Source: Aplysia californica (lineage: Eukaryota). Taken from it: DNA of 64,000 nucleotides. The notes under the pieces were generated by a model. It ran no database searches and had not been told where the DNA came from. It saw nothing but the letters and a program-made list of their open reading frames with translations. The position numbers and the translations under genes are program-made. Position 1 is the stretch's first letter; every line of letters begins with the position of its first letter. Where the stretch lies: contig NW_004798575.1 of NCBI RefSeq assembly GCF_000002075.1, positions 5,359 to 69,358 on the forward strand, read 5' to 3'. Below are positions 20,964 through 64,000 of this stretch, one piece after another.

Positions 20964-21111
20964 GGAATGACTTCCGTAACGAGCGACTACCCTATCAAAC
21001 ACAATAAAGAAGAGGCCTAACCCTACCCCTACCCCTACCCCTAAACCTACCCCTACCCCTAGCCCTCAATCCTGCTGTCTCATAGTGGTCGCTCGTTACG
21101 GAAGTCCTCCC
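20964..21111. mobile_element. Small MITE with an internal telomere-like (CCCTAC/CCCTAA) run
   Basis: 22-bp IR gacttccgtaacgagcgactac (20969-20990) / gtggtcgctcgttacggaagtc (21085-21106), one mismatch; ttttgtt on both flanks. Confidence 0.7.
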
Positions 21112-21304
21112 ATTTTGTTAATCGACATGCTTGTTTTCGTGACGATGTAGCGTATCTTTGTTTTTCATACAGATTTTCTATTCAGTTTCAGTTAAACTTA
21201 CAGTTAAAAAAGCAGGCAACAAAGTGCAGTTTTGTGACAAAGTGTGATATAGAATCTGGGCATTTCTAGCTCTCTCCATTTTTCTGGCTTTCAGAAAAAT
21301 TAAA

Positions 21305-21460: not shown

Positions 21461-22012
21461 ATTTTGATACTTATGAATTTTTTTTCGCACAGGGGATGTT
21501 CAGCACTCCCAACAGCCTGCCCGCCATTACTAGACTTGGCAGAGGACCCAAAGCATGGCATTTCTAATGGACCACAAAGGTTTGTTTTGTTTTAATGTCC
21601 AAACGGGAAGTTAGTGTGAAGGTTGGGGTGGTGGTAGAAATGTTATAAATTAATACAAGGATGCCAAATGTCCGTTTTTTCCGGGTTTTTTTCATCCATT
21701 TTTGTTTGCTCATTTATAAGCTTTTCAAGGTTCGGTTTAGGTGAGATGTGATGCTCCACTCATTTTCAGTTTTTTTTTCTCCAAAAATCATTTGTCATCC
21801 CTGTTATAATTAGAAAGTATTTGAAAGATAGCCAGCTCAGGTGGAAATACAACCTTTCTATTGTAAATAAAAAGGAGACGCACGTTCTGACCTATTGTAA
21901 CGTTTCATTTTGTTTAGCATATGCAAATATATTAATATAGACATTTTGCACAGGGATTGTACTCCTTGAAACACTCGAGTGAAATTTAAGCATGTTGAGG
22001 CCTAAGCAAGGA

Positions 22013-25000
22013 AATAAAAACTGCAGATTCAACTTTTAAGGAAATACATAATTAGCTCTCTCCTGTTTTTTAGATATTTATTCAGAATACATTTTTATGG
22101 ATGTGTCTAGTATTTTTGTCAACCATTGAAGTGGGAATATTTTAATTTCTTTAGGGTATGGAACCTTCCTTCTGATTTTGTATTTTTTGACAAGAATCAT
22201 GCCCTATAAAAACCTGGTCCTTCATTTTGAACCTTGAGTGAAAATTTGAGTGAGGTGTGGCCAAAGCATGGAAATCAAGCTGTAAAGACTTCCTGTTTTT
22301 GGATAGAGCATTAGTTTTCTCCTTTTAAAAAATTTGTCAGAGTACATCCAGTTTGAAGAGATGCATTGTGGAAGAGCATGGAGTCATGTAGGACCAGCCA
22401 ACAGAGATGGTGGGAATTGCAATGTTTTTTGCCTTCTTTGGCCCGTTTTCAATTGTCTCAGAGTATATCCTTGTTGCGAGTCCTAAGTGGCAGAAACAGC
22501 ACATAAGGTTATCGAGCTGCTGCCAATAACTATTGAAGCCAATACAGTGCGGGTACTTAAAATGCAGTTATCTTTTCAACATTTGCGCCACTATGGCGAT
22601 GACCTGACTGAAACAGCCCCTAAGCTCAGCAAGCTGCAGTCAGTGAGGAAATAGAATCTGGCATTTACGGTTGGCAGAAACAGCACCTAAGAATAGCAAA
22701 GCTGCTGCCTATAAAACCGAAATAGATGAAGATTGGCCATGAACATCGATAGATGAAAATTGTCAGTGATCATTTGTGAGAAAAGTACTATGTAAGGAAA
22801 AGAAATGTGGCTATCTCTGAGACAATTATAACCATCATGGTGAGGACTGATGGTTGTGGTTTTATTGTTGTTGTTTTTTAAAATTTTGGAACATTTCAAA
22901 TGTTTGTTGGTTTCATTTTCCTTTGTTTTGAACTCCTTTACCTGTTTGAGCAGCGTTTTTGAAGTTCGCTGAAATTTTCTCTTTCAGATTTTCTCCGCTT
23001 TATGTTCGGAGTTGAAAACGTTCAATTTCCTTTTTGTGTTGAACTTTTCTCCTTTATCTGTTTGAGCAGCGTTTTTGAAGTTCGCTGAAATTTGCACTTT
23101 GAGATTTTCTCCGCTTTATGTTCGGAGTTGAAAACGTTGCAGAAGAATTCTTTTGAGTTGTCCGTTTGAAGATTCGAAATTGAATTTCGTTCGTTTGGTT
23201 TTCTTCTTGATTGATTTTCCAAACCACAGATATTTAAAAAAATAGTCTGTTACTTTTGTGAGTAGGTCGGTGTAGCGTAGGATGGTTGACTGAAACAGCC
23301 CCTAAAGTGAACAAGCTGCAGTCAAAAGATTGTTCCTGGCAGAAACAGCACCTAAAGTTATCTAGCTGCTGCCAGTAAGTTGTGCCACTAGTAAACTATA
23401 TCAGCTAATATCATTGTGCAAGTACTTAAAATGCAGTTATCTTTTGGACATTTTGAGCCAGTATGCCGATGACTGAAACAGCACCTAAGCTCAGCAAGCT
23501 GCAGTCAATGAGGAAATAAAATATGTGGCATTTACGGTTGGCAGATACAGCACCTAAGAATAGCAAAGCTGCTGCCTTTTGAACATGGATAGATGAAGAT
23601 TGGCCGTGATAATTTCTGATGAAACCAGTGATCATTTTGAGCCGCTATGGCGATGACTGAAACAGCCCCTAAGCTCAGCAAGCTGCAGTCAGTGAGGAAA
23701 TAGAATCTGGCATTTACGGTTGGCAGAAACAGCACCTAAGAATAGCAAAGCTGCTGCCTATAAAACCGAAATAGATGAAGATTGGCATGATAATTTCTGA
23801 TGAAACCAGTGATCATTTTGAGCCACTATGGCGATGACTGAAACAGCCCCTAAGCTCAGCAAGCTGCAGTCAATGAGGAAATAGAATATGGTATTTCGGA
23901 TCGGCAGAAACAGCCCCTAAGAATATCAAGCTGCTGCCTGTAGAGCCACAATAGATGATGATTGCCCTTGATAATTTTTGATGAAACCATTGAAGGCAGT
24001 ACTATGTGAATGAAACATGTGCGACATTCTTGTAGACATTTTGAAGTATTATCATCACAGGGCGTGACAGTTGTCAGAACCAGCACCTGAGACTAGCAAG
24101 TGTCTTTCTGGAGAGGACGTTCAGCACTTCCCCCTACCCTCCGGCCTGGGCAGAGGACCAGCGGCGGAGGAGCCAGACCAGGGCACTTCTAACAGACCGT
24201 TAAGGTTTGTTTGTTTTGAGTGGATGTCCGAGAGGGAACTTGGGCTGAGGTTAGGGTGGGAAGTGTGATAGTAAGAGAGTTTTAGAAAGACCGCCCGTCA
24301 CGGTGGAAATGCAACCGTTCTATTGTAAATCTGGAAATGTTTCATTTTGTTGTTCATACCGTCCAGAGGTTGTGAACTGGTATTTTTTCCACGAGCACTG
24401 TACTTCATGAAAACTTGGTTGTTAATTCTGCTCTGTGAGTAAGACTGAAATTCTATTGTTTTTCAGAGTACATCCCGTTTCAAGAGATGTATTCTGGAAG
24501 AGCCTCGAGTCATGTAGGACCAGCCAAGTGAAAAAGTAAGAATTTGCAATTTTGTTAGTCTTCTTTGCTTTTGAAGTGAATAATTTATGTATGTGAAAGG
24601 GGAAATAAGTTATGAGGGAGAATGGAGAAAATTAGACTTTTGTCGGTGAATTAAAGGAAATGCATATATTTTGAGACCATTTCATGTTCCATTGTCTTTG
24701 ACAAGTGANNNNNNNNNNNNNNNNNNNNNNNNNNNNNNNNNNNNNNNNNNNNNNNNNNNNNNNNNNNNNNNNNNNNNNNNNNNNNNNNNNNNNNNNNNNN
24801 NNNNNNNNAATAAAAACTGCAGATTCAACTTTTAAGGAAATACATAATTAGCTCTCTCCTGTTTTTTAGATATTTATTCAGAATACATTTTTATGGATGT
24901 GTCTAGTATTTTTGTCAACCATTGAAGTGGGAATATTTTAATTTCTTTAGGGTATGGAACCTTCCTTCTGATTTTGTATTTTTTGACAAGAATCATGCCC

Positions 25001-28000
25001 TATAAAAACCTGGTCCTTCATTTTGAACCTTGAGTGAAAATTTGAGTGAGGTGTGGCCAAAGCATGGAAATCAAGCTGTAAAGACTTCCTGTTTTTGGAT
25101 AGAGCATTAGTTTTCTCCTTTTAAAAAATTTGTCAGAGTACATCCAGTTTGAAGAGATGCATTGTGGAAGAGCATGGAGTCATGTAGGACCAGCCAACAG
25201 AGATGGTGGGAATTGCAATGTTTTTTGCCTTCTTTGGCCCGTTTTCAATTGTCTCAGAGTATATCCTTGTTGCGAGTCCTAAGTGGCAGAAACAGCACAT
25301 AAGGTTATCGAGCTGCTGCCAATAACTATTGAAGCCAATACAGTGCGGGTACTTAAAATGCAGTTATCTTTTCAACATTTGCGCCACTATGGCGATGACC
25401 TGACTGAAACAGCCCCTAAGCTCAGCAAGCTGCAGTCAGTGAGGAAATAGAATCTGGCATTTACGGTTGGCAGAAACAGCACCTAAGAATAGCAAAGCTG
25501 CTGCCTATAAAACCGAAATAGATGAAGATTGGCCATGAACATCGATAGATGAAAATTGTCAGTGATCATTTGTGAGAAAAGTACTATGTAAGGAAAAGAA
25601 ATGTGGCTATCTCTGAGACAATTATAACCATCATGGTGAGGACTGATGGTTGTGGTTTTATTGTTGTTGTTTTTTAAAATTTTGGAACATTTCAAATGTT
25701 TGTTGGTTTCATTTTCCTTTGTTTTGAACTCCTTTACCTGTTTGAGCAGCGTTTTTGAAGTTCGCTGAAATTTTCTCTTTCAGATTTTCTCCGCTTTATG
25801 TTCGGAGTTGAAAACGTTCAATTTCCTTTTTGTGTTGAACTTTTCTCCTTTATCTGTTTGAGCAGCGTTTTTGAAGTTCGCTGAAATTTGCACTTTGAGA
25901 TTTTCTCCGCTTTATGTTCGGAGTTGAAAACGTTGCAGAAGAATTCTTTTGAGTTGTCCGTTTGAAGATTCGAAATTGAATTTCGTTCGTTTGGTTTTCT
26001 TCTTGATTGATTTTCCAAACCACAGATATTTAAAAAAATAGTCTGTTACTTTTGTGAGTAGGTCGGTGTAGCGTAGGATGGTTGACTGAAACAGCCCCTA
26101 AAGTGAACAAGCTGCAGTCAAAAGATTGTTCCTGGCAGAAACAGCACCTAAAGTTATCTAGCTGCTGCCAGTAAGTTGTGCCACTAGTAAACTATATCAG
26201 CTAATATCATTGTGCAAGTACTTAAAATGCAGTTATCTTTTGGACATTTTGAGCCAGTATGCCGATGACTGAAACAGCACCTAAGCTCAGCAAGCTGCAG
26301 TCAATGAGGAAATAAAATATGTGGCATTTACGGTTGGCAGATACAGCACCTAAGAATAGCAAAGCTGCTGCCTTTTGAACATGGATAGATGAAGATTGGC
26401 CGTGATAATTTCTGATGAAACCAGTGATCATTTTGAGCCGCTATGGCGATGACTGAAACAGCCCCTAAGCTCAGCAAGCTGCAGTCAGTGAGGAAATAGA
26501 ATCTGGCATTTACGGTTGGCAGAAACAGCACCTAAGAATAGCAAAGCTGCTGCCTATAAAACCGAAATAGATGAAGATTGGCCATGATAATTTCTGATGA
26601 AGCCAGTGATCATTTTGAGCCACTATGGCGATGACTGAAACAGCCCCTAAGCTCAGCAAGCTGCAGTCAATGAGGAAATAGAATATGGTATTTCGGATCG
26701 GCAGAAACAGCCCCTAAGAATATCAAGCTGCTGCCTGTAGAGCCACAATAGATGATGATTGCCCTTGATAATTTTTGATGAAACCATTGAAGGCAGTACT
26801 ATGTGAATGAAACATGTGCGACATTCTTGTAGACATTTTGAAGTATTATCATCACAGGGCGTGACAGTTGTCAGAACCAGCACCTGAGACTAGCAAGTGT
26901 CTTTCTGGAGAGGACGTTCAGCACTTCCCCCTACCCTCCGGCCTGGGCAGAGGACCAGCGGCGGAGGAGCCAGACCAGGGCACTTCTAACAGACCGTTAA
27001 GGTTTGTTTGTTTTGAGTGGATGTCCGAGAGGGAACTTGGGCTGAGGTTAGGGTGGGAAGTGTGATAGTAAGAGAGTTTTAGAAAGACCGCCCGTCACGG
27101 TGGAAATGCAACCGTTCTATTGTAAATCTGGAAATGTTTCATTTTGTTGTTCATACCGTCCAGAGGTTGTGAACTGGTATTTTTTCCACGAGCACTGTAC
27201 TTCATGAAAACTTGGTTGTTAATTCTGCTCTGTGAGTAAGACTGAAATTCTATTGTTTTTCAGAGTACATCCCGTTTCAAGAGATGTATTCTGGAAGAGC
27301 CTCGAGTCATGTAGGACCAGCCAAGTGAAAAAGTAAGAATTTGCAATTTTGTTAGTCTTCTTTGCTTTTGAAGTGAATAATTTATGTATGTGAAAGGGGA
27401 AATAAGTTATGAGGGAGAATGGAGAAAATTAGACTTTTGTCGGTGAATTAAAGGAAATGCATATATTTTGAGACCATTTCATGTTCCATTGTCTTTGACA
27501 AGTGATTGTTACGGATGTGTTTAGTATTTTAGTCAAGCATTGTAGTGGGAATATTTTAATTTCTTTAGCATATGGAACCTTCCTTCTGATTTTGTATTTT
27601 TCGACAAGAATCGTACCCCATGAAAACCTGGTTCTTAATTCTGAACATGAAAATTGAGCGAGGTGTGGCCAAAGCATGGAAATCAAGCTGCACAGACTTC
27701 CTGTTTTGGGATAGAGCATTAGTTTTCTCCTTTTGAAAAATTTCTCAGAGTACATCCAGTTTGAAGAGATGCATTGTGGAAGAGCATGGAGTCATGTAGG
27801 ACCAGCCAACAGAGATGGTGGGAATTGCAATGTTTTTTGCCTTCTTTGGCCCGTTTTCAATTGTCTCAGAGTATATCCTTGTTGCGAGTCCTAAGTGGCA
27901 GAAACAGCACATAAGGTTATCGAGCTGCTGCCAATAACTATTGAAGCCAATACAGTGCGGGTACTTAAAATGCAGTTATCTTTTCAACATTTGCGCCACT

Positions 28001-31000
28001 ATGGCGATGACCTGACTGAAACAGCCCCTAAGCTCAGCAAGCTGCAGTCAGTGAGGAAATAGAATCTGGCATTTACGGTTGGCAGAAACAGCACCTAAGA
28101 ATAGCAAAGCTGCTGCCTATAAAACCGAAATAGATGAAGATTGGCCATGAACATCGATAGATGAAAATTGTCAGTGATCATTTGTGAGAAAAGTACTATG
28201 TAAGGAAAAGAAATGTGGCTATCTCTGAGACAATTATAACCATCATGGTGAGGACTGATGGTTGTGGTTTTATTGTTGTTGTTTTTTAAAATTTTGGAAC
28301 ATTTCAAATGTTTGTTGGTTTCATTTTCCTTTGTTTTGAACTCCTTTACCTGTTTGAGCAGCGTTTTTGAAGTTCGCTGAAATTTTCTCTTTCAGATTTT
28401 CTCCGCTTTATGTTCGGAGTTGAAAACGTTCAATTTCCTTTTTGTGTTGAACTTTTCTCCTTTATCTGTTTGAGCAGCGTTTTTGAAGTTCGCTGAAATT
28501 TGCACTTTGAGATTTTCTCCGCTTTATGTTCGGAGTTGAAAACGTTGCAGAAGAATTCTTTTGAGTTGTCCGTTTGAAGATTCGAAATTGAATTTCGTTC
28601 GTTTGGTTTTCTTCTTGATTGATTTTCCAAACCACAGATATTTAAAAAAATAGTCTGTTACTTTTGTGAGTAGGTCGGTGTAGCGTAGGATGGTTGACTG
28701 AAACAGCCCCTAAAGTGAACAAGCTGCAGTCAAAAGATTGTTCCTGGCAGAAACAGCACCTAAAGTTATCTAGCTGCTGCCAGTAAGTTGTGCCACTAGT
28801 AAACTATATCAGCTAATATCATTGTGCAAGTACTTAAAATGCAGTTATCTTTTGGACATTTTGAGCCAGTATGCCGATGACTGAAACAGCACCTAAGCTC
28901 AGCAAGCTGCAGTCAATGAGGAAATAAAATATGTGGCATTTACGGTTGGCAGATACAGCACCTAAGAATAGCAAAGCTGCTGCCTTTTGAACATGGATAG
29001 ATGAAGATTGGCCGTGATAATTTCTGATGAAACCAGTGATCATTTTGAGCCGCTATGGCGATGACTGAAACAGCCCCTAAGCTCAGCAAGCTGCAGTCAG
29101 TGAGGAAATAGAATCTGGCATTTACGGTTGGCAGAAACAGCACCTAAGAATAGCAAAGCTGCTGCCTATAAAACCGAACTAGATGAAGATTGGCCATGAT
29201 AATTTCTGATGAAACCAGTGATCATTTTGAGCCACTATGGCGATGACTGAAACAGCCCCTAAGCTCAGCAAGCTGCAGTCAGTGAGGAAATAGAATCTGG
29301 CATTTACGGTTGGCAGAAACAGCACCTAAGAATAGCAAAGCTGCTGCCTATAAAACCGAAATAGATGAAGATTGGCCATGATAATTTCTGATGAAGCCAG
29401 TGATCATTTTGAGCCACTATGGCGATGACTGAAACAGCCCCTAAGCTCAGCAAGCTGCAGTCAGTGAGGAAATAGAATCTGGCATTTACGGTTGGCAGAA
29501 ACAGCACCTAAGAATAGCAAAGCTGCTGCCTATAAAACCGAAATAGATGAAGATTGGCATGATAATTTCTGATGAAGCCAGTGATCATTTTGAGCCACTA
29601 TGGCGATGACTGAAACAGCCCCTAAGCTCAGCAAGCTGCAGTCAGTGAGGAAATAGAATCTGGCATTTACGGTTGGCAGAAACAGCACCTAAGAATAGCA
29701 AAGCTGCTGCCTATAAAACCGAAATAGATGAAGATTGGCCATGATAATTTCTGATGAAACCAGTGATCATTTTGAGCCACTATGGCGATGACTGAAACAG
29801 CCCCTAAGCTCAGCAAGCTGCAGTCAGTGAGGAAATAGAATCTGGCATTTACGGTTGGCAGAAACAGCACCTAAGAATAGCAAAGCTGCTGCCTATAAAA
29901 CCGAAATAGATGAAGATTGGCATGATAATTTCTGATGAAACCAGTGATCATTTTGAGCCACTATGGCGATGACTGAAACAGCCCCTAAGCTCAGCAAGCT
30001 GCAGTCAGTGAGGAAATAGAATCTGGCATTTACGGTTGGCAGAAACAGCACCTAAGAATAGCAAAGCTGCTGCCTATAAAACCGAAATAGATAAAGATTG
30101 GCCATGATAATTTCTGATGAAGCCAGTGATCATTTTGAGCCACTATGGCGATGACTGAAACAGCCCCTAAGCTCAGCAAGCTGCAGTCAGTGAGGAAATA
30201 GAATCTGGCATTTACGGTTGGCAGAAACAGCACCTAAGAATAGCAAAGCTGCTGCCTATAAAACCGAAATAGATAAAGATTGGCCATGATAATTTCTGAT
30301 GAAGCCAGTGATCATTTTGAGCCACTATGGCGATGACTGAAACAGCCCCTAAGCTCAGCAAGCTGCAGTCAGTGAGGAAATAGAATCTGGCATTTACGGT
30401 TGGCAGAAACAGCACCTAAGAATAGCAAAGCTGCTGCCTATAAAACCGAAATAGATGAAGATTGGCCATGAACATCGATAGATGAAAATTGTCAGTGATC
30501 ATTTGTGAGAAAAGTACTATGTAAGGAAAAGAAATGTGGCTATCTCTGAGACAATTATAACCATCATGGTGAGGACTGATGGTTGTGGTTTTATTGTTGT
30601 ACTTTTTAAAAATTTTTGAACATTTCAAATGTTTGTTGGTTTCATTTTCCTTTGTTTTGAACTCCTTTACCTGTTTGAGCAGCGTTTTTGAAGTTCGCTG
30701 AAATTTTCTCTTTCAGATTTTCTCCGCTTTATGTTCGGAGTTGAAAACGTTCAATTTCCTTTTTGTGTTGAACTTTTCTCCTTTATCTGTTTGAGCAGCG
30801 TTTTTGAAGTTCGCTGAAATTTGCACTTTGAGATTTTCTCCGCTTTATGTTCGGAGTTGAAAACGTTGCAGAAGAATTCTTTTGAGTTGTCCGTTTGAAG
30901 ATTCGAAATTGAATTTCGTTCGTTTGGTTTTCTTCTTGATTGATTTTCCAAACCACAGATATTTAAAAAAATAGTCTGTTACTTTTGTGAGTAGGTCGGT

Positions 31001-34000
31001 GTAGCGTAGGATGGTTGACTGAAACAGCCCCTAAAGTGAACAAGCTGCAGTCAAAAGATTGTTCCTGGCAGAAACAGCACCTAAAGTTATCTAGCTGCTG
31101 CCAGTAAGTTGTGCCACTAGTAAACTATATCAGCTAATATCATTGTGCAAGTACTTAAAATGCAGTTATCTTTTGGACATTTTGAGCCAGTATGCCGATG
31201 ACTGAAACAGCACCTAAGCTCAGCAAGCTGCAGTCAATGAGGAAATAAAATATGTGGCATTTACGGTTGGCAGATACAGCACCTAAGAATAGCAAAGCTG
31301 CTGCCTTTTGAACATGGATAGATGAAGATTGGCCGTGATAATTTCTGATGAAACCAGTGATCATTTTGAGCCGCTATGGCGATGACTGAAACAGCCCCTA
31401 AGCTCAGCAAGCTGCAGTCAATGAGGAAATAGAATATGGTATTTCGGATCGGCAGAAACAGCCCCTAAGAATATCAAGCTGCTGCCTGTAGAGCCACAAT
31501 AGATGATGATTGCCCTTGATAATTTTTGATGAAACCATTGAAGGCAATACTATGAGAATGAAACATGTGCGACATTCTTGTAGACATTTTGAAGTATTAT
31601 CATCACAGGGCGTGACAGTTGTCAGAACCAGCACATGAGACTAGCAAGTGTCTTTCTGGAGAGGACGTTCAGCACTTCCCCCTACCCTCCGACCTGGGCA
31701 GAGGACCAGCGGCGGAGGAGCCAGACCAGGGCACTTCTAACAGACCGTTAAGGTTTGTTTGTTTTGAGTGGATGTCCGAGAGGGAACTTGGGCTGAGGTT
31801 AGGGTGGGAAGTGTGATAGTAAGAGAGTTTTAGAAAGACCGCCCGTCACGGTGGAAATGCAACCGTTCTATTGTAAATCTGGAAATGTTTCATTTTGTTG
31901 TTCATACCGTCCAGAGGTTGTGAACTGGTATTTTTTCCACGAGCACTGTACTTCATGAAAACTTGGTTGTTAATTCTGCTCTGTGAGTAAGACTGAAATT
32001 CTATTGTTTTTCAGAGTACATCCCGTTTCAAGAGATGTATTCTGGAAGAGCCTCGAGTCATGTAGGACCAGCCAAGTGAAAAAGTAAGAATTTGCAATTT
32101 TGTTAGTCTTCTTTGCTTTTGAAGTGAATAATTTATGTATGTGAAAGGGGAAATAAGTTATGAGGGAGAATGGAGAAAATTAGACTTGTCGCTGAATTAA
32201 AGGAAATGCATATATTTTGAGACCATTTCATGTTCCATTGTCTTTGACAAGTGGTTGTTACGGATGTGTTTAGTATTTTAGTCAAGCATTGTAGTGGGAA
32301 TATTTTAATTTCTTTAGCGTATGGAACCTTCCTTCTGATTTTGTATTTTTCGACAAGAATCGTACCCCATGAAAACCTGGTTCTTAATTCTGAACATGAA
32401 AATTGAGCGAGGTGTGGCCAAAGCATGGAAATCAAGCTGCAAAGACTTCCTGTTTTGGGATAGAGCATTAGTTTTCTCCTTTTGAAAAATTTCTCAGAGT
32501 ACATCCAGTTTGAAGAGATGCATTGTGGAAGAGCATGGAGTCATGTAGGACCAGCCAACAGAGATGGTGGGAATTGCAATGTTTTTTGCCTTCTTTGGCC
32601 CGTTTTCAATTGTCTCAGAGTATATCCTTGTTGCGAGTCCTAAGTGGCAGAAACAGCACATAAGGTTATCGAGCTGCTGCCAATAACTATTGAAGCCAAT
32701 ACAGTGCGGGTACTTAAAATGCAGTTATCTTTTCAACATTTGCGCCACTATGGCGATGACCTGACTGAAACAGCCCCTAAGCTCAGCAAGCTGCAGTCAG
32801 TGAGGAAATAGAATCTGGCATTTACGGTTGGCAGAAACAGCACCTAAGAATAGCAAAGCTGCTGCCTATAAAACCGAAATAGATGAAGATTGGCCATGAA
32901 CATCGATAGATGAAAATTGTCAGTGATCATTTGTGAGAAAAGTACTATGTAAGGAAAAGAAATGTGGCTATCTCTGAGACAATTATAACCATCATGGTGA
33001 GGACTGATGGTTGTGGTTTTATTGTTGTTGTTTTTTAAAATTTTTGAACATTTCAAATGTTTGTTGGTTTCATTTTCCTTTGTTTTGAACTCCTTTACCT
33101 GTTTGAGCAGCGTTTTTGAAGTTCGCTGAAATTTTCTCTTTCAGATTTTCTCCGCTTTATGTTCGGAGTTGAAAACGTTCAATTTCCTTTTTGTGTTGAA
33201 CTTTTCTCCTTTATCTGTTTGAGCAGCGTTTTTGAAGTTCGCTGAAATTTGCACTTTGAGATTTTCTCCGCTTTATGTTCGGAGTTGAAAACGTTGCAGA
33301 AGAATTCTTTTGAGTTGTCCGTTTGAAGATTCGAAATTGAATTTCGTTCGTTTGGTTTTCTTCTTGATTGATTTTCCAAACCACAGATATTTAAAAAAAT
33401 AGTCTGTTACTTTTGTGAGTAGGTCGGTGTAGCGTAGGATGGTTGACTGAAACAGCCCCTAAAGTGAACAAGCTGCAGTCAAAAGATTGTTCCTGGCAGA
33501 AACAGCACCTAAAGTTATCTAGCTGCTGCCAGTAAGTTGTGCCACTAGTAAACTATATCAGCTAATATCATTGTGCAAGTACTTAAAATGCAGTTATCTT
33601 TTGGACATTTTGAGCCAGTATGCCGATGACTGAAACAGCACCTAAGCTCAGCAAGCTGCAGTCAATGAGGAAATAAAATATGTGGCATTTACGGTTGGCA
33701 GATACAGCACCTAAGAATAGCAAAGCTGCTGCCTTTTGAACATGGATAGATGAAGATTGGCCGTGATAATTTCTGATGAAACCAGTGATCATTTTGAGCC
33801 GCTATGGCGATGACTGAAACAGCCCCTAAGCTCAGCAAGCTGCAGTCAATGAGGAAATAGAATATGGTATTTCGGATCGGCAGAAACAGCCCCTAAGAAT
33901 ATCAAGCTGCTGCCTGTAGAGCCACAATAGATGATGATTGCCCTTGATAATTTTTGATGAAACCATTGAAGGCAATACTATGAGAATGAAACATGTGCGA

Positions 34001-52000: not shown

Positions 52001-55000
52001 GTCAGTGAGGAAATAGAATCTGGCATTTACGGTTGGCAGAAACAGCACCTAAGAATAGCAAAGCTGCTGCCTATAAAACCGAACTAGATGAAGATTGGCC
52101 ATGATAATTTCTGATGAAACCAGTGATCATTTTGAGCCACTATGGCGATGACTGAAACAGCCCCTAAGCTCAGCAAGCTGCAGTCAGTGAGGAAATAGAA
52201 TCTGGCATTTACGGTTGGCAGAAACAGCACCTAAGAATAGCAAAGCTGCTGCCTATAAAACCGAAATAGATGAAGATTGGCCATGATAATTTCTGATGAA
52301 GCCAGTGATCATTTTGAGCCACTATGGCGATGACTGAAACAGCCCCTAAGCTCAGCAAGCTGCAGTCAGTGAGGAAATAGAATCTGGCATTTACGGTTGG
52401 CAGAAACAGCACCTAAGAATAGCAAAGCTGCTGCCTATAAAACCGAAATAGATGAAGATTGGCCATGAACATCGATAGATGAAAATTGTCAGTGATCATT
52501 TGTGAGAAAAGTACTATGTAAGGAAAAGAAATGTGGCTATCTCTGAGACAATTATAACCATCATGGTGAGACTGATGGTTGTGGTTTTATTGTTGTTGTT
52601 TTTTTTATATTTTTGAACATTTCAAATGTTTGTTGGTTTCATTTTCCTTTGTTTTGAACTCCTTTACCTGTTTGAGCAGCGTTTTTGAAGTTCGCTGAAA
52701 TTTTCTCTTTCAGATTTTCTCCGCTTTATGTTCGGAGTTGAAAACGTTCAATTTCCTTTTTGTGTTGAACTTTTCTCCTTTATCTGTTTGAGCAGCGTTT
52801 TTGAAGTTCGCTGAAATTTGCACTTTGAGATTTTCTCCGCTTTATGTTCGGAGTTGAAAACGTTGCAGAAGAATTCTTTTTGAGTTGTCCGTTTGAAGAT
52901 TCGAAATTGAATTTCGTTCGTTTGGTTTTCTTCTTGATTGATTTTCCAAACCACAGATATTTAAAAAAATAGTCTGTTACTTTTGTGAGTAGGTCGGTGT
53001 AGCGTAGGATGGTTGACTGAAACAGCCCCTAAAGTGAACAAGCTGCAGTCAAAAGATTGTTCCTGGCAGAAACAGCACCTAAAGTTATCTAGCTGCTGCC
53101 AGTAAGTTGTGCCACTAGTAAACTATATCAGCTAATATCATTGTGCAAGTACTTAAAATGCAGTTATCTTTTGGACATTTTGAGCCAGTATGCCGATGAC
53201 TGAAACAGCACCTAAGCTCAGCAAGCTGCAGTCAATGAGGAAATAAAATATGTGGCATTTACGGTTGGCAGATACAGCACCTAAGAATAGCAAAGCTGCT
53301 GCCTTTTGAACATGGATAGATGAAGATTGGCCGTGATAATTTCTGATGAAACCAGTGATCATTTTGAGCCGCTATGGCGATGACTGAAACAGCCCCTAAG
53401 CTCAGCAAGCTGCAGTCAGTGAGGAAATAGAATCTGGCATTTACGGTTGGCAGAAACAGCACCTAAGAATAGCAAAGCTGCTGCCTATAAAACCGAAATA
53501 GATGAAGATTGGCCATGATAATTTCTGATGAAGCCAGTGATCATTTTGAGCCACTATGGCGATGACTGAAACAGCCCCTAAGCTCAGCAAGCTGCAGTCA
53601 ATGAGGAAATAGAATATGGTATTTCGGATCGGCAGAAACAGCCCCTAAGAATATCAAGCTGCTGCCTGTAGAGCCACAATAGATGATGATTGCCCTTGAT
53701 AATTTTTGATGAAACCATTGAAGGCAGTACTATGTGAATGAAACATGTGCGACATTCTTGTAGACATTTTGAAGTATTATCATCACAGGGCGTGACAGTT
53801 GTCAGAACCAGCACCTGAGACTAGCAAGTGTCTTTCTGGAGAGGACGTTCAGCACTTCCCCCTACCCTCCGGCCTGGGCAGAGGACCAGCGGCGGAGGAG
53901 CCAGACCAGGGCACTTCTAACAGACCGTTAAGGTTTGTTTGTTTTGAGTGGATGTCCGAGAGGGAACTTGGGCTGAGGTTAGGGTGGGAAGTGTGATAGT
54001 AAGAGAGTTTTAGAAAGACCGCCCGTCACGGTGGAAATGCAACCGTTCTATTGTAAATCTGGAAATGTTTCATTTTGTTGTTCATACCGTCCAGAGGTTG
54101 TGAACTGGTATTTTTTCCACGAGCACTGTACTTCATGAAAACTTGGTTGTTAATTCTGCTCTGTGAGTAAGACTGAAATTCTATTGTTTTTCAGAGTACA
54201 TCCCGTTTCAAGAGATGTATTCTGGAAGAGCCTCGAGTCATGTAGGACCAGCCAAGTGAAAAAGTAAGAATTTGCAATTTTGTTAGTCTTCTTTGCTTTT
54301 GAAGTGAATAATTTATGTATGTGAAAGGGGAAATAAGTTATGAGGGAGAATGGAGAAAATTAGACTTGTCGCTGAATTAAAGGAAATGCATATATTTTGA
54401 GACCATTTCATGTTCCATTGTCTTTGACAAGTGGTTGTTACGGATGTGTTTAGTATTTTAGTCAAGCATTGTAGTGGGAATATTTTAATTTCTTTAGCGT
54501 ATGGAACCTTCCTTCTGATTTTGTATTTTTCGACAAGAATCGTACCCCATGAAAACCTGGTTCTTAATTCTGAACATGAAAATTGAGCGAGGTGTGGCCA
54601 AAGCATGGAAATCAAGCTGCAAAGACTTCCTGTTTTGGGATAGAGCATTAGTTTTCTCCTTTTGAAAAATTTCTCAGAGTACATCCAGTTTGAAGAGATG
54701 CATTGTGGAAGAGCATGGAGTCATGTAGGACCAGCCAACAGAGATGGTGGGAATTGCAATGTTTTTTGCCTTCTTTGGCCCGTTTTCAATTGTCTCAGAG
54801 TATATCCTTGTTGCGAGTCCTAAGTGGCAGAAACAGCACATAAGGTTATCGAGCTGCTGCCAATAACTATTGAAGCCAATACAGTGCGGGTACTTAAAAT
54901 GCAGTTATCTTTTCAACATTTGCGCCACTATGGCGATGACCTGACTGAAACAGCCCCTAAGCTCAGCAAGCTGCAGTCAGTGAGGAAATAGAATCTGGCA

Positions 55001-58000
55001 TTTACGGTTGGCAGAAACAGCACCTAAGAATAGCAAAGCTGCTGCCTATAAAACCGAAATAGATGAAGATTGGCCATGAACATCGATAGATGAAAATTGT
55101 CAGTGATCATTTGTGAGAAAAGTACTATGTAAGGAAAAGAAATGTGGCTATCTCTGAGACAATTATAACCATCATGGTGAGACTGATGGTTGTGGTTTTA
55201 TTGTTGTTGTTTTTTTTATATTTTTGAACATTTCAAATGTTTGTTGGTTTCATTTTCCTTTGTTTTGAACTCCTTTACCTGTTTGAGCAGCGTTTTTGAA
55301 GTTCGCTGAAATTTTCTCTTTCAGATTTTCTCCGCTTTATGTTCGGAGTTGAAAACGTTCAATTTCCTTTTTGTGTTGAACTTTTCTCCTTTATCTGTTT
55401 GAGCAGCGTTTTTGAAGTTCGCTGAAATTTGCACTTTGAGATTTTCTCCGCTTTATGTTCGGAGTTGAAAACGTTGCAGAAGAATTCTTTTGAGTTGTCC
55501 GTTTGAAGATTCGAAATTGAATTTCGTTCGTTTGGTTTTCTTCTTGATTGATTTTCCAAACCACAGATATTTAAAAAAATAGTCTGTTACTTTTGTGAGT
55601 AGGTCGGTGTAGCGTAGGATGGTTGACTGAAACAGCCCCTAAAGTGAACAAGCTGCAGTCAAAAGATTGTTCCTGGCAGAAACAGCACCTAAAGTTATCT
55701 AGCTGCTGCCAGTAAGTTGTGCCACTAGTAAACTATATCAGCTAATATCATTGTGCAAGTACTTAAAATGCAGTTATCTTTTGGACATTTTGAGCCAGTA
55801 TGCCGATGACTGAAACAGCACCTAAGCTCAGCAAGCTGCAGTCAATGAGGAAATAAAATATGTGGCATTTACGGTTGGCAGATACAGCACCTAAGAATAG
55901 CAAAGCTGCTGCCTTTTGAACATGGATAGATGAAGATTGGCCGTGATAATTTCTGATGAAACCAGTGATCATTTTGAGCCGCTATGGCGATGACTGAAAC
56001 AGCCCCTAAGCTCAGCAAGCTGCAGTCAGTGAGGAAATAGAATCTGGCATTTACGGTTGGCAGAAACAGCACCTAAGAATAGCAAAGCTGCTGCCTATAA
56101 AACCGAACTAGATGAAGATTGGCCATGATAATTTCTGATGAAACCAGTGATCATTTTGAGCCACTATGGCGATGACTGAAACAGCCCCTAAGCTCAGCAA
56201 GCTGCAGTCAGTGAGGAAATAGAATCTGGCATTTACGGTTGGCAGAAACAGCACCTAAGAATAGCAAAGCTGCTGCCTATAAAACCGAAATAGATGAAGA
56301 TTGGCCATGAACATCGATAGATGAAAATTGTCAGTGATCATTTGTGAGAAAAGTACTATGTAAGGAAAAGAAATGTGGCTATCTCTGAGACAATTATAAC
56401 CATCATGGTGAGACTGATGGTTGTGGTTTTATTGTTGTTGTTTTTTTTATATTTTTGAACATTTCAAATGTTTGTTGGTTTCATTTTCCTTTGTTTTGAA
56501 CTCCTTTACCTGTTTGAGCAGCGTTTTTGAAGTTCGCTGAAATTTTCTCTTTCAGATTTTCTCCGCTTTATGTTCGGAGTTGAAAACGTTCAATTTCCTT
56601 TTTGTGTTGAACTTTTCTCCTTTATCTGTTTGAGCAGCGTTTTTGAAGTTCGCTGAAATTTGCACTTTGAGATTTTCTCCGCTTTATGTTCGGAGTTGAA
56701 AACGTTGCAGAAGAATTCTTTTGAGTTGTCCGTTTGAAGATTCGAAATTGAATTTCGTTCGTTTGGTTTTCTTCTTGATTGATTTTCCAAACCACAGATA
56801 TTTAAAAAAATAGTCTGTTACTTTTGTGAGTAGGTCGGTGTAGCGTAGGATGGTTGACTGAAACAGCCCCTAAAGTGAACAAGCTGCAGTCAAAAGATTG
56901 TTCCTGGCAGAAACAGCACCTAAAGTTATCTAGCTGCTGCCAGTAAGTTGTGCCACTAGTAAACTATATCAGCTAATATCATTGTGCAAGTACTTAAAAT
57001 GCAGTTATCTTTTGGACATTTTGAGCCAGTATGCCGATGACTGAAACAGCACCTAAGCTCAGCAAGCTGCAGTCAATGAGGAAATAAAATATGTGGCATT
57101 TACGGTTGGCAGATACAGCACCTAAGAATAGCAAAGCTGCTGCCTTTTGAACATGGATAGATGAAGATTGGCCGTGATAATTTCTGATGAAACCAGTGAT
57201 CATTTTGAGCCGCTATGGCGATGACTGAAACAGCCCCTAAGCTCAGCAAGCTGCAGTCAGTGAGGAAATAGAATCTGGCATTTACGGTTGGCAGAAACAG
57301 CACCTAAGAATAGCAAAGCTGCTGCCTATAAAACCGAAATAGATGAAGATTGGCCATGATAATTTCTGATGAAGCCAGTGATCATTTTGAGCCACTATGG
57401 CGATGACTGAAACAGCCCCTAAGCTCAGCAAGCTGCAGTCAATGAGGAAATAGAATATGGTATTTCGGATCGGCAGAAACAGCCCCTAAGAATATCAAGC
57501 TGCTGCCTGTAGAGCCACAATAGATGATGATTGCCCTTGATAATTTTTGATGAAACCATTGAAGGCAGTACTATGTGAATGAAACATGTGCGACATTCTT
57601 GTAGACATTTTGAAGTATTATCATCACAGGGCGTGACAGTTGTCAGAACCAGCACCTGAGACTAGCAAGTGTCTTTCTGGAGAGGACGTTCAGCACTTCC
57701 CCCTACCCTCCGGCCTGGGCAGAGGACCAGCGGCGGAGGAGCCAGACCAGGGCACTTCTAACAGACCGTTAAGGTTTGTTTGTTTTGAGTGGATGTCCGA
57801 GAGGGAACTTGGGCTGAGGTTAGGGTGGGAAGTGTGATAGTAAGAGAGTTTTAGAAAGACCGCCCGTCACGGTGGAAATGCAACCGTTCTATTGTAAATC
57901 TGGAAATGTTTCATTTTGTTGTTCATACCGTCCAGAGGTTGTGAACTGGTATTTTTTCCACGAGCACTGTACTTCATGAAAACTTGGTTGTTAATTCTGC

Positions 58001-61000
58001 TCTGTGAGTAAGACTGAAATTCTATTGTTTTTCAGAGTACATCCCGTTTCAAGAGATGTATTCTGGAAGAGCCTCGAGTCATGTAGGACCAGCCAAGTGA
58101 AAAAGTAAGAATTTGCAATTTTGTTAGTCTTCTTTGCTTTTGAAGTGAATAATTTATGTATGTGAAAGGGGAAATAAGTTATGAGGGAGAATGGAGAAAA
58201 TTAGACTTGTCGCTGAATTAAAGGAAATGCATATATTTTGAGACCATTTCATGTTCCATTGTCTTTGACAAGTGGTTGTTACGGATGTGTTTAGTATTTT
58301 AGTCAAGCATTGTAGTGGGAATATTTTAATTTCTTTAGCGTATGGAACCTTCCTTCTGATTTTGTATTTTTCGACAAGAATCGTACCCAATGAAAACCTG
58401 GTTCTTAATTCTGAACATGAAAATTGAGCGAGGTGTGGCCAAAGCATGGAAATCAAGCTGCAAAGACTTCCTGTTTTGGGATAGAGCATTAGTTTTCTCC
58501 TTTTGAAAAATTTCTCAGAGTACATCCAGTTTGAAGAGATGCATTGTGGAAGAGCATGGAGTCATGTAGGACCAGCCAACAGAGATGGTGGGAATTGCAG
58601 TGTTTTTTGCCTTCTTTGGCCCGTTTTCAATTGTCTCAGAGTATATCCTTGTTGCGAGTCCTAAGTGGCAGAAACAGCACATAAGGTTATCGAGCTGCTG
58701 CCAATAACTATTGAAGCCAATACAGTGCGGGTACTTAAAATGCAGTTATCTTTTCAACATTTGCGCCACTATGGCGATGACCTGACTGAAACAGCCCCTA
58801 AGCTCAGCAAGCTGCAGTCAGTGAGGAAATAGAATCTGGCATTTACGGTTGGCAGAAACAGCACCTAAGAATAGCAAAGCTGCTGCCTATAAAACCGAAA
58901 TAGATGAAGATTGGCCATGAACATCGATAGATGAAAATTGTCAGTGATCATTTGTGAGAAAAGTACTATGTAAGGAAAAGAAATGTGGCTATCTCTGAGA
59001 CAATTATAACCATCATGGTGAGGACTGATGGTTGTGGTTTTATTGTTGTTGTTTTTTAAAATTTTTGAACATTTCAAATGTTTGTTGGTTTCATTTTCCT
59101 TTGTTTTGAACTCCTTTACCTGTTTGAGCAGCGTTTTTGAAGTTCGCTGAAATTTTCTCTTTCAGATTTTCTCCGCTTTATGTTCGGAGTTGAAAACGTT
59201 CAATTTCCTTTTTGTGTTGAACTTTTCTCCTTTATCTGTTTGAGCAGCGTTTTTGAAGTTCGCTGAAATTTGCACTTTGAGATTTTCTCCGCTTTATGTT
59301 CGGAGTTGAAAACGTTGCAGAAGAATTCTTTTGAGTTGTCCGTTTGAAGATTCGAAATTGAATTTCGTTCGTTTGGTTTTCTTCTTGATTGATTTTCCAA
59401 ACCACAGATATTTAAAAAAATAGTCTGTTACTTTTGTGAGTAGGTCGGTGTAGCGTAGGATGGTTGACTGAAACAGCCCCTAAAGTGAACAAGCTGCAGT
59501 CAAAAGATTGTTCCTGGCAGAAACAGCACCTAAAGTTATCTAGCTGCTGCCAGTAAGTTGTGCCACTAGTAAACTATATCAGCTAATATCATTGTGCAAG
59601 TACTTAAAATGCAGTTATCTTTTGGACATTTTGAGCCAGTATGCCGATGACTGAAACAGCACCTAAGCTCAGCAAGCTGCAGTCAATGAGGAAATAAAAT
59701 ATGTGGCATTTACGGTTGGCAGATACAGCACCTAAGAATAGCAAAGCTGCTGCCTTTTGAACATGGATAGATGAAGATTGGCCGTGATAATTTCTGATGA
59801 AACCAGTGATCATTTTGAGCCGCTATGGCGATGACTGAAACAGCCCCTAAGCTCAGCAAGCTGCAGTCAGTGAGGAAATAGAATCTGGCATTTACGGTTG
59901 GCAGAAACAGCACCTAAGAATAGCAAAGCTGCTGCCTATAAAACCGAAATAGATGAAGATTGGCCATGATAATTTCTGATGAAGCCAGTGATCATTTTGA
60001 GCCACTATGGCGATGACTGAAACAGCCCCTAAGCTCAGCAAGCTGCAGTCAGTGAGGAAATAGAATCTGGCATTTACGGTTGGCAGAAACAGCACCTAAG
60101 AATAGCAAAGCTGCTGCCTATAAAACCGAAATAGATGAAGATTGGCCATGATAATTTCTGAAGCCAGTGATCATTTTGAGCCACTATGGCGATGACTGAA
60201 ACAGCCTCTAAACTCAGCAAGCTGCAGTCAGTGAGGAAATAGAATATGGTATTTCAGATCGGCAGAAACAGCCCTTAAGAATAGCAAGCTGCTGCCTTTT
60301 GAACATCGATAGATGAAAATTGTCAGTGATCATTTCTGAGAAAAGTACTATGTAAGGAAAAAAAATGTGGCTATCTCTGAGACAATTATAACCATCATGG
60401 TGAGGACTGATGGTTGTGGTTTTATTGTTGTTCTTTTAAAAAAAATTTTGAACATTTCAAATGTTTGTTTTCATTTTCCTTTGTTTTGAACTCCTTTACC
60501 TGTTTGAGCAGCGTTTTTGAAGTTCGCTGAAATTTTCTCTTTCAGATTTTCTCCGCTTTATGTTCGGAGTTGAAAACGTTGCAGAAGAATTCTTTTGAGT
60601 TGTCCGTTTGAAGATTCGAAATTGAATTTCGTTCGTTTGGTTTTCTTCTTGATTGATTTTCCAAACCACAGATATTTAAAAAAATAGTCTGTTACTTTTG
60701 TGAGTAGGTCGGTGTAGCGTAGGATGGTTGACTGAAACAGCCCCTAAAGTGAACAAGCTGCAGTCAAAAGATTGTTCCTGGCAGAAACAGCACCTAAAGT
60801 TATCTAGCTGCTGCCAGTAAGTTGTGCCACTAGTAAACTATATCAGCTAATATCATTGTGCAAGTACTTAAAATGCAGTTATCTTTTGGACATTTTGAGC
60901 CAGTATGCCGATGACTGAAACAGCACCTAAGCTCAGCAAGCTGCAGTCAATGAGGAAATAAAATATGTGGCATTTACGGTTGGCAGATACAGCACCTAAG

Positions 61001-64000
61001 AATAGCAAAGCTGCTGCCTTTTGAACATGGATAGATGAAGATTGGCCGTGATAATTTCTGATGAAACCAGTGATCATTTTGAGCCGCTATGGCGATGACT
61101 GAAACAGCCCCTAAGCTCAGCAAGCTGCAGTCAGTGAGGAAATAGAATCTGGCATTTACGGTTGGCAGAAACAGCACCTAAGAATAGCAAAGCTGCTGCC
61201 TATAAAACCGAAATAGATGAAGATTGGCCATGAACATCGATAGATGAAAATTGTCAGTGATCATTTGTGAGAAAAGTACTATGTAAGGAAAAGAAATGTG
61301 GCTATCTCTGAGACAATTATAACCATCATGGTGAGGACTGATGGTTGTGGTTTTATTGTTGTTCTTTTAAAAAAAATTTTGAACATTTCAAATGTTTGTT
61401 TTCATTTTCCTTTGTTTTGAACTCCTTTACCTGTTTGAGCAGCGTTTTTGAAGTTCGCTGAAATTTTCTCTTTCAGATTTTCTCCGCTTTATGTTCGGAG
61501 TTGAAAACGTTGCAGAAGAATTCTTTTGAGTTGTCCGTTTGAAGATTCGAAATTGAATTTCGTTCGTTTGGTTTTCTTCTTGATTGATTTTCCAAACCAC
61601 AGATATTTAAAAAAATAGTCTGTTACTTTTGTGAGTAGGTCGGTGTAGCGTAGGATGGTTGACTGAAACAGCCCCTAAAGTGAACAAGCTGCAGTCAAAA
61701 GATTGTTCCTGGCAGAAACAGCACCTAAAGTTATCTAGCTGCTGCCAGTAAGTTGTGCCACTAGTAAACTATATCAGCTAATATCATTGTGCAAGTACTT
61801 AAAATGCAGTTATCTTTTGGACATTTTGAGCCAGTATGCCGATGACTGAAACAGCACCTAAGCTCAGCAAGCTGCAGTCAATGAGGAAATAAAATATGTG
61901 GCATTTACGGTTGGCAGATACAGCACCTAAGAATAGCAAAGCTGCTGCCTTTTGAACATGGATAGATGAAGATTGGCCGTGATAATTTCTGATGAAACCA
62001 GTGATCATTTTGAGCCGCTATGGCGATGACTGAAACAGCCCCTAAGCTCAGCAAGCTGCAGTCAATGAGGAAATAGAATATGGTATTTCGGATCGGCAGA
62101 AACAGCCCCTAAGAATATCAAGCTGCTGCCTGTAGAGCCACAATAGATGATGATTGCCCTTGATAATTTTTGATGAAACCATTGAAGGCAGTACTATGTG
62201 AATGAAACATGTGCGACATTCTTGTAGACATTTTGAAGTATTATCATCACAGGGCGTGACAGTTGTCAGAACCAGCACCTGAGACTAGCAAGTGTCTTTC
62301 TGGAGAGGACGTTCAGCACTTCCCCCTACCCTCCGGCCTGGGCAGAGGACCAGCGGCGGAGGAGCCAGACCAGGGCACTTCTAACAGACCGTTAAGGTTT
62401 GTTTGTTTTGAGTGGATGTCCGAGAGGGAACTTGGGCTGAGGTTAGGGTGGGAAGTGTGATAGTAAGAGAGTTTTAGAAAGACCGCCCGTCACGGTGGAA
62501 ATGCAACCGTTCTATTGTAAATCTGGAAATGTTTCATTTTGTTGTTCATACCGTCCAGAGGTTGTGAACTGGTATTTTTTCCACGAGCACTGTACTTCAT
62601 GAAAACTTGGTTGTTAATTCTGCTCTGTGAGTAAGACTGAAATTCTATTGTTTTTCAGAGTACATCCCGTTTCAAGAGATGTATTCTGGAAGAGCCTCGA
62701 GTCATGTAGGACCAGCCAAGTGAAAAAGTAAGAATTTGCAATTTTGTTAGTCTTCTTTGCTTTTGAAGTGAATAATTTATGTATGTGAAAGGGGAAATAA
62801 GTTATGAGGGAGAATGGAGAAAATTAGACTTGTCGCTGAATTAAAGGAAATGCATATATTTTGAGACCATTTCATGTTCCATTGTCTTTGACAAGTGGTT
62901 GTTACGGATGTGTTTAGTATTTTAGTCAAGCATTGTAGTGGGAATATTTTAATTTCTTTAGCGTATGGAACCTTCCTTCTGATTTTGTATTTTTCGACAA
63001 GAATCGTACCCCATGAAAACCTGGTTCTTAATTCTGAACATGAAAATTGAGCGAGGTGTGGCCAAAGCATGGAAATCAAGCTGCAAAGACTTCCTGTTTT
63101 GGGATAGAGCATTAGTTTTCTCCTTTTGAAAAATTTCTCAGAGTACATCCAGTTTGAAGAGATGCATTGTGGAAGAGCATGGAGTCATGTAGGACCAGCC
63201 AACAGAGATGGTGGGAATTGCAATGTTTTTTGCCTTCTTTGGCCCGTTTTCAATTGTCTCAGAGTATATCCTTGTTGCGAGTCCTAAGTGGCAGAAACAG
63301 CACATAAGGTTATCGAGCTGCTGCCAATAACTATTGAAGCCAATACAGTGCGGGTACTTAAAATGCAGTTATCTTTTCAACATTTGCGCCACTATGGCGA
63401 TGACCTGACTGAAACAGCCCCTAAGCTCAGCAAGCTGCAGTCAGTGAGGAAATAGAATCTGGCATTTACGGTTGGCAGAAACAGCACCTAAGAATAGCAA
63501 AGCTGCTGCCTATAAAACCGAAATAGATGAAGATTGGCATGATAATTTCTGATGAAGCCAGTGATCATTTTGAGCCACTATGGCGATGACTGAAACAGCC
63601 TCTAAACTCAGCAAGCTGCAGTCAGTGAGGAAATAGAATATGGTATTTCAGATCGGCAGAAACAGCCCTTAAGAATAGCAAGCTGCTGCCTTTTGAACAT
63701 CGATAGATGAAAATTGTCAGTGATCATTTCTGAGAAAAGTACTATGTAAGGAAAAAAAATGTGGCTATCTCTGAGACAATTATAACCATCATGGTGAGGA
63801 CTGATGGTTGTGGTTTTATTGTTGTTCTTTTAAAAAAAATTTTGAACATTTCAAATGTTTGTTTTCATTTTCCTTTGTTTTGAACTCCTTTACCTGTTTG
63901 AGCAGCGTTTTTGAAGTTCGCTGAAATTTTCTCTTTCAGATTTTCTCCGCTTTATGTTCGGAGTTGAAAACGTTGCAGAAGAATTCTTTTGAGTTGTCCG
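22013..64000. repeat. Hierarchical tandem array (macrosatellite): 182-bp monomer, 1049-bp block, 2428-bp unit; runs off the window end
   Basis: Near-identical ORFs recur in the ORF track: 11 copies of the exon-A block (24061, 26858, 31609, 34037, 36647, 43496, 45924, 49583, 53789, 57630, 62253) and 20 complete copies of the AT-rich block. Confidence 0.98.
29060..30470. repeat. Long pure run of the 182-bp monomer (about 7-8 copies); similar runs at about 37800-38850 and 51790-52470
   Basis: gactgaaacagcccctaagctcagcaagctgcagtc...ttggcagaaacagcacctaagaatagcaaagctgctgcc...ctgatgaa(a/g)ccagtgatcattttgagccactatggcgat, period 181-182. Confidence 0.97.

Follow-up and report, generated by a model that had tools for sequence, protein, structure and literature searches.

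What kind of element fills the array found in a 64,000-nucleotide stretch of the Aplysia californica genome (contig NW_004798575.1, positions 5,359 to 69,358 of the forward strand)? This whole stretch is called the window here, and positions refer to it unless stated otherwise. Between 22487 and 63690 the window is occupied by one short bulged hairpin repeated about 200 times, which could be a satellite, the body of a long scaffold RNA or something else. The hairpins look like an unclassified RNA element carried in introns, neither a plain satellite nor the main part of a scaffold RNA. Transcription of the locus follows the + strand, which is the hairpin strand, and the transcript is spliced; the hairpins are, as judged by sequence comparison, selectively conserved with their pairing kept. 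The reading that we favour, although we give it somewhat less than an even chance, is that they are selected intronic RNA modules of a tandemly repeated, spliced non-coding gene, acting as RNA and most likely released as small ribonucleoprotein particles (RNPs).

Hairpins and gene units of the array

A search pattern made of the inner stem and the 3' arm detected 210 bulged hairpins, all on the + strand, with matches between 22497 and about 63690, where shuffled sequence gives 0.06 by chance. The number agrees with the approximately 200 copies counted in the initial annotation, whose stem variants exist at the positions given there and whose loop variants were all recovered. Two types can be distinguished by the outer stem, type B (GGCAG/CUGCC, 111 copies) and type A (GACUG/CAGUC in 97 of 99 copies, with a U.G pair, GACUG/CGGUC, in the other two). 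This outer stem had been described as always pairing, which is true for the 5-bp core only, since the commonest type B copy has a U.U just outside GGCAG/CUGCC. Of the bulges, 190 read AAA and 20 read AUA, and the loop appears in 10 variants. Only about 16 distinct 56-nt hairpin versions are present in the window, indicating that its 200 copies are mostly the result of recent amplification and do not amount to 200 independent tests.

In both types an outer stem of 5-6 bp leads, past a bulge of 3 nt, to an inner stem of 4 bp; above it come a small internal loop and an apical stem of 3 bp (CUA/UAG), closed by a tip of 4 nt. The three short tiers comprise 13 bp, and the hairpin is about 40 nt long. 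It is then followed by a conserved single-stranded tail with the word UGAUG. Single copies from the window folded as expected, with energies of -10 to -11.4 kcal/mol and z values of -1.1 to -1.5. One example of each type and one of the tail are the following:

22604..22646, + strand: type A hairpin, CUGACUG-AAA-CAGC-loop-GCUG-CAGUCAG, its fold computed on an equivalent copy
22671..22711, + strand: type B hairpin, GGCAG-AAA-CAGC-AC-CUA-AGAA-UAG-CAAA-GCUG-CUGCC, minimum free energy -11.4 kcal/mol, folding as proposed into three tiers, with the bulge of 3 nt between outer and inner stem and the internal loop below the 3-bp apical stem
23694..23708, + strand: single-stranded tail after a hairpin A, GUGAGGAAAUAGAAU in the window and AAUGAUGAAAUAGR in paralogs

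The family consensus loops are near-palindromic, CUAAGCUUAG in type A and CUAAGAUUAG in type B (for example L026 1215-1257 and L037 4563-4605), and could either pair within their own hairpin, as its apical stem, or make loop-loop contacts with other hairpins.

The hairpins are part of a larger mosaic. The array consists of units of 2.4-6.8 kb that carry three exons, called here X, E1 and E2. Tandem Repeats Finder resolved 182-bp A+B dimers into blocks of 2 to 9 copies each, and anchor motifs placed these blocks inside the larger units. There are 11 full units in the window, and exon X has 11 copies in the window and 13 on the contig. In all of the 11 full units the stretch that goes from E2 to the next X contains between 9 and 41 hairpins, always alternating as b,a,...,b. 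The locus starts with a diverged copy of exon X, upstream of the interval 22487-63690, and the array continues past the end of the window to approximately contig position 75,470, where it is followed by a diverged E-like exon. Altogether the locus covers the region from 21.5 kb in the window to contig position 75.5 kb, with about 13 tandem units of X, E1 and E2. The word GGACCAG recurs in the three exons. The features used below are:

21493..21579, + strand: diverged first copy of exon X, cacag/GGGATGTTCAGC...CACAAAG/gtttg (slashes at the exon borders), a putative homologue of X with predicted splice-site dinucleotides
22341..22409, + strand: first copy of E2, a predicted exon in this locus, 69 nt, with AG/GT flanks
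22341, 25137, 27749, 32498, 34926, 37536, 44385, 46813, 50472, 54678, 58519 and 63142, + strand: starts of the 12 copies of exon E2 in the window
26858..27001, + strand: exon X, 144 nt, G+C-rich; a contig starts X here after AG and joins X to E1
27002..27263, + strand: X-E1 intron, 262 nt, GT..AG, skipped in RNA-derived contigs
27264..27332, + strand: exon E1, 69 nt, with 11 copies in the window
27749..27817, + strand: exon E2 of the unit whose X starts at 26858, 69 nt, with splice-site flanks
27818..31608, + strand: one of the hairpin-bearing stretches between an E2 and the following X, 29 hairpins, read as an intron whose removal is suggested by the X acceptor and the depths
28857..30471, + strand: longest run of 182-bp A+B dimers, with 8.9 copies that are 97% alike
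24709..24808, no strand: assembly gap, within an E1-E2 intron and not in a hairpin

The sequence to the left of the assembly gap is 100% identical to 27100-27505, and the sequence to the right (24809-25296) is 100% identical to 22013-22500, the usual unit being regained only at 24887, that is, after 78 extra bases. The two flanks are therefore out of register and continuity across the gap is not established, so the order and number of units are uncertain at this point and the order is possibly an effect of the assembly.

Transcription, splicing and coding potential

We compared the region 25100-28900 with four public runs, two of them RNA-like contig sets (X5 and X11, from different studies and with different organism labels), one tiny run and one run of poly(A) raw reads. 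Contigs of both X5 and X11 join 27001 to 27264, skipping 262 nt with GT..AG borders on the + strand, and the depth at this X-E1 join is 100 in X5 and 61.5 in X11. In one contig exon X begins at 26858 directly after AG, with 29 letters from an upstream exon in front of it. Within the genome, such an X was found in this locus only, with its 13 copies, indicating that the RNA with X joined to E1 comes from here. Exon depths were 100/67 and 80/34 versus 9-16 in plain intron. The E2 copies of this locus had intron-like depth only in both runs, a splice from E2 to E1 was seen only in a paralog-type contig, and splices of paralog type, from E1 to E2 and from X to E1, were present as loose ends. The tiny run gave an even, unspliced contig of 1.4 kb and is probably DNA.

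We read the stretch from E2 to the next X, with all its hairpins, as an intron. Contigs with hairpins had depths of 13-59 in the RNA-like runs, which per copy is about the level of intron and demonstrates no stable product. These values bear directly on the proposal made in the initial annotation, a multivalent scaffold RNA. The constraint on the hairpins and the transcription of their strand speak for it; on the other side, the hairpins lie between exons and have only about intron-level depth. Since they are not demonstrated in the mature RNA, and contigs cannot reveal isoforms, the analogy with scaffold RNAs is only partly supported. Like the Xist A-repeat, roX and NORAD, the Aplysia array offers many short conserved hairpins plus a single-stranded motif per transcript, an arrangement suited to multivalent protein binding. 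In those RNAs, however, the repeats are in the mature molecule, and they have neither sequence likeness to the Aplysia hairpins nor an Rfam match to them. That the conserved elements are carried in the introns of a tandem non-coding gene favours instead a host gene for small RNPs.

A related alternative, which we regard as rather unlikely, is that the hairpins are never released and serve as a multivalent platform for proteins, in cis, on the transcript while it is nascent or where it is retained. Such a platform might hold the RNA at its locus, control the splicing of the repeated exons or act as a sponge for a protein. It is consistent with the many identical sites per transcript, with the conservation of loop and tail sequence, as expected of a protein site, and with near-palindromic loops that could kiss. 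Furthermore, the depth of hairpin and intron stretches is a fairly high share of the exon depth, by our estimate about 0.1-0.2 per copy. Against it, the exons are far more abundant than the hairpin stretches. The present data cannot separate this platform from a processed small RNP.

Exons X, E1 and E2 are judged to be non-coding, with no conserved frame. None of the three frames of exon X is free of stops. Across X, E1 and E2 there is one frame whose stops in this locus are all UGA (each exon being judged separately), and in paralogs it gains UAA (E2 of C220) or UAG (E1 of C20). The substitutions in this nearly open frame are mostly non-silent, with no silent bias. A coding gene or a selenoprotein was rejected on account of these paralogous UAA and UAG codons together with the non-silent changes. 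The exon lengths (144, 69 and 69 nt) are all multiples of three, and E1 and E2 still have 69 nt in the C220 paralog.

Conservation of the hairpins across the gene family

By its sequence, the gene unit is present at 10 or more loci of the A. californica genome, which was searched over 927,310,431 bases in 4332 contigs. The same exon order, with hairpins on the exon strand, was found at C20, C57, C203, C220, C256, C634, C1363, C1371 and C2084. Several of these paralogous loci are built from repeats of an 86-nt module that carries a single type B hairpin. The best 150 matches of a covariance model of the hairpin were all in such arrays, and a strict pattern gave 244 sites, of which the first 100 listed were all on contigs of the family (the backwards control gave 0). 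Scans of metagenomes with the hairpin pattern gave no match, and our literature searches found no description of this hairpin gene family.

Comparison between families showed that the hairpins are conserved islands. Identity is 66-72% over the whole unit, 77-84% in the exons and 84-92% in the hairpins. When the A-B modules of six loci were aligned, identity was 0.80 in hairpin A and 0.81 in hairpin B and only 0.27-0.45 in the flanks and spacers; the highest value of any segment across families, 0.87, corresponded to the 15-nt tail after hairpin A (AAUGAUGAAAUAGR). At a finer scale, 73 units of 86 nt from five arrays had minor-allele fractions of 0-0.6% for the stems and 1.8% for the loop, compared with 13.7% for the bulge and 10.8% for the spacer, and the first 12 nt 3' of the hairpin were near-invariant. 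The low variation of stems, loop and tail next to a variable bulge indicates that the whole hairpin and its tail are constrained and that the sequence of the bulge is free. Two details of the initial annotation have to be reversed here: the bulge, described as near-invariant, is the most variable part at the family level, and the loop, described as drifting freely, hardly varies in the 86-nt subfamily and forms the small apical stem CUA/UAG.

The pairing itself is also maintained. Among 84 distinct versions, 90% of the cells were paired, compared with 7-57% when the partners were slid, and the covariation score was 0.133 versus 0.058 in shuffles, a value matched by 0 of 500 of them. A hand tally gave roughly seven or eight two-sided changes. 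Types A and B differ at two pairs (G-C to A-U and A-U to U-A), the inner stem's closing pair changes from C-G via A.G to A-U, and the apical pair from C-G to U-A, with six U.G cases. A pair outside the core varies yet stays complementary, and C1363 has three different complementary stem extensions of 3-4 bp. The constrained fold proposed at first is thus upheld, with islands kept in at least 10 diverged paralogous loci and two-sided changes that preserve the pairing. The first 45 nt of exon X contain a decayed homologue of the hairpin (about 26866-26900) that has lost its pairing in all families.

The same data bear on the alternative that the palindrome matters, or just persists, at the level of DNA, satellite-like repeats of 86 and 182 bp being kept by templating during replication or repair, or used by a selfish amplification of rolling-circle or Helitron type, with no role for RNA structure. 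The periods are indeed satellite-like. Four loci (C220, C256, C57 and C1371) have flanks that are 84-94% identical with common boundaries, over at least 6 kb upstream and at least 4.3 kb downstream, indicating that whole loci of about 30 kb were copied or moved as blocks. In one subfamily, moreover, a CTAG stands just after hairpin B, as at the 3' ends of Helitrons, and the sense strand shows none of the G.U excess discussed below. Nevertheless, we consider this explanation improbable. The CTAG is absent in the other subfamilies, and the matches listed (the best 150 of the model, the first 100 of the 244 of the pattern) are in the same few gene-like loci and in one orientation to the exons. 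The loop and the tail, and not only the arms, are conserved while the flanks fall to 27-45%, which the templated repair of a palindrome does not explain. In addition, the homologue in exon X has lost its pairing, and the flanks shared by the paralogs contain no transposase or Rep-like open reading frame (ORF).

The corresponding mobile elements were rejected as well. The hairpin does not have the features of a Helitron 3' end, which the initial annotation had named as a finding that would count against its proposal. Such an end would be a tight hairpin with a CTRR terminus about 10 nt downstream, in dispersed copies placed between A and T; here CTAG is found in one subfamily, and the copies listed all lie in about 10 gene-like loci and are not dispersed. 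As for a carrier transposon, the only terminal inverted repeats detected around the loci were one weak pair at C220, which is not convincing, and no ORF in the shared paralog flanks contained a Pfam domain. A repeat of 530 bp, 83% alike, stands in inverted orientation on either side of the locus (17750-18251 and contig C1305 approximately 82,924-83,451), and it has copies near other arrays, which makes a common interspersed element more probable than a terminal repeat.

It could also be thought that the hairpin runs are precursors of small silencing RNAs, in a cluster of the Piwi-interacting RNA (piRNA) or small interfering RNA type, the hairpins being incidental or processing marks. The locus is long, single-stranded, repeated, non-coding and expressed in some samples only, and molluscs express piRNAs broadly, which fits such a cluster as a matter of general knowledge. 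However, conserved islands of 40 nt with kept pairing are not expected of it and stems of 13 bp are too short for Dicer or Drosha, which makes this explanation very improbable.

Comparison with known RNA classes and possible role

The covariance models of Rfam 15 gave no match at the gathering score in the whole window, and when one unit and a paralog were scanned permissively, the hits stayed at chance level (E 0.77-9) and below half of the gathering score, in line with the initial annotation, which did not recognise the motif as a known family. Several classes were considered individually. A box C-like sequence (RUGAUGA) is present as AAUGAUGA after hairpin A in most paralogs and as GUGAGGA or AUGAGGA in the copies of the window, and UGAUGU is found 3' of hairpin B in the 86-nt units. 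The only conserved CUGA is found upstream of the C-like box, where it belongs to the 5' arm of hairpin A and is paired, no complementary flanks that could form a terminal stem were found, and the consensus fold consists of two hairpins only, which also disposes of any larger structure around the A-B pair. A small nucleolar RNA (snoRNA) of the box C/D kind was discarded for the want of a D box with a terminal stem of 4-5 bp and of guide complementarity, for which at least 10 nt to the 18S, 28S, U4 or U6 RNA of this same genome were required. An H/ACA snoRNA, for which the same guide complementarity and the order hairpin-ANANNA-hairpin-ACA with two-sided pseudouridylation pockets were required, was discarded as well, the hairpin having only a one-sided 3-nt bulge and about 40 nt, with ANANNA and ACA not conserved across families. 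The precursor of a microRNA would require about 22 bp or more of stem and a hairpin length of about 60-70 nt, compared with the 13 bp and about 40 nt seen here.

Self-cleaving ribozymes gave no family match even at E values up to 10, and the words CUGAUGA and GAAA are not, by eye, arranged as in a hammerhead. A selenocysteine insertion sequence (SECIS), which would need a non-Watson-Crick AUGA/GA quartet, a helix II of at least 9 bp and AAR in the apical loop, was rejected too: AUGA precedes hairpin A in this locus only, its GA is in Watson-Crick pairs, with the AAA 3 nt after it, and there is no conserved reading frame. Finally, a word of 10 nt, AAGAUUAGCA, is shared with U6 by the 86-nt paralog unit only (p = 0.02, uncorrected); the unit of the window has no such similarity and no match to the U6 model was obtained. 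An origin from U6 or U4, or a role as a sponge of U4, was rejected on the grounds that this match is non-significant and absent from this locus.

Satellites with hammerhead ribozymes (those of newts, schistosomes and the retrozymes) resemble the array in their tandem, transcribed monomers of nucleosome size (182 bp here) with conserved hairpins. They differ in that no ribozyme core was found in the Aplysia repeat, its monomers are inside a spliced gene unit with exons, and its hairpins are conserved far beyond the flanks of the monomer.

A closer counterpart is found in the SNORD116/IPW-A and SNORD115 arrays of the mammalian Prader-Willi locus, tandem non-coding host genes with intron-encoded small RNAs (PMC12429941, PMC4742849). 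Both systems are made of tandem units of short, spliced, non-coding exons; in both the best-conserved element is intronic and local amplification has produced near-identical copies. Neither is confined to a single place, with several loci in Aplysia and two clusters in mammals. The Aplysia locus has the anatomy of such a host gene, with spliced exons (X-E1 in two runs) and an intronic element better conserved than the rest. The differences are also clear. The Aplysia element is not a C/D snoRNA, with no D box with a terminal stem and no complementarity to ribosomal RNA, and it appears 9-41 times per intron in two alternating types where the SNORD genes have one copy per intron. Besides, the small RNA of Aplysia is putative, suggested by the anatomy of the gene.

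By this analogy, release as small RNPs can be inferred for the favoured reading. The hairpin and tail modules would be repeated binding sites for one or two proteins in the primary transcript, and they would most likely be cut from the excised intron as small stable RNPs, like intron-encoded snoRNAs; the tandem amplification would simply raise their dose. A stronger version, possible but doubtful, is that the modules form a class of small RNP of their own, new and encoded in introns, which tandem non-coding host genes at 10 or more loci would produce in mass. They would then be, with the same reservation, a mollusc counterpart of the SNORD115/116 arrays with a different fold and two alternating types of partner.

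Several results weigh against the favoured reading. The hairpin stretches have by estimate only about 0.1-0.2 of the exon depth per copy, the same as other intron, and the join that would remove them (from E2 or E1 to the next X) was not seen in the contigs. The run of poly(A) raw reads gave only 2 partial reads, indicating either a restricted expression or an RNA without poly(A) tail. The loops and tails showed Watson-Crick runs of at most 4-8 nt with 18S, 28S, U4 and U6, no better than shuffles. The hairpins of the window are thermodynamically ordinary, and with such unremarkable single-sequence energies the case rests on conservation. Here too there are reservations. Most of the covariation, including that pointed out in the initial annotation, reflects a single old split into types A and B, and all the sequences come from one genome. 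The mismatches of the sense strand comprise 3 G.U against 11 A.C, and this lack of a G.U excess leaves room for pairing at the DNA level.

If the modules are functional RNA, a classic model animal of neurobiology would possess a structured RNA motif that has not been described before, in hundreds to thousands of copies. The locus would then be a second, independent case of tandem non-coding exons serving mainly to deliver intronic RNAs, a gene design so far known chiefly from imprinted mammalian snoRNA clusters whose function is still debated, and the hairpin family offers many natural variants for structure-function work. Should it be only a palindrome acting as DNA, it still shows that a 'satellite' can be a spliced gene with multiple exons.

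Some other repeats are found in the surroundings. Short tandem arrays at 7133-7320 (38-nt units, 4.9 copies) and 7755-7857 (21-nt units, 5.1 copies) are unrelated to the hairpin family. Just upstream of the first exon of the gene, at 20963-21112, a 28-nt inverted repeat (89% complementary) surrounds a (CCCTAC)n-like microsatellite at 21016-21066, and has the look of a small fold-back element. Just after the array (contig C1305, about 76.8-77.1 kb; L013 7780-8140) there is a G/T-rich minisatellite (GGTCGAAGTTGTTGTCATGG-like), and a related one, in the same orientation, stands just before the single unit on C20 (L037 5340-5700), so this minisatellite may have been part of the ancestral locus.

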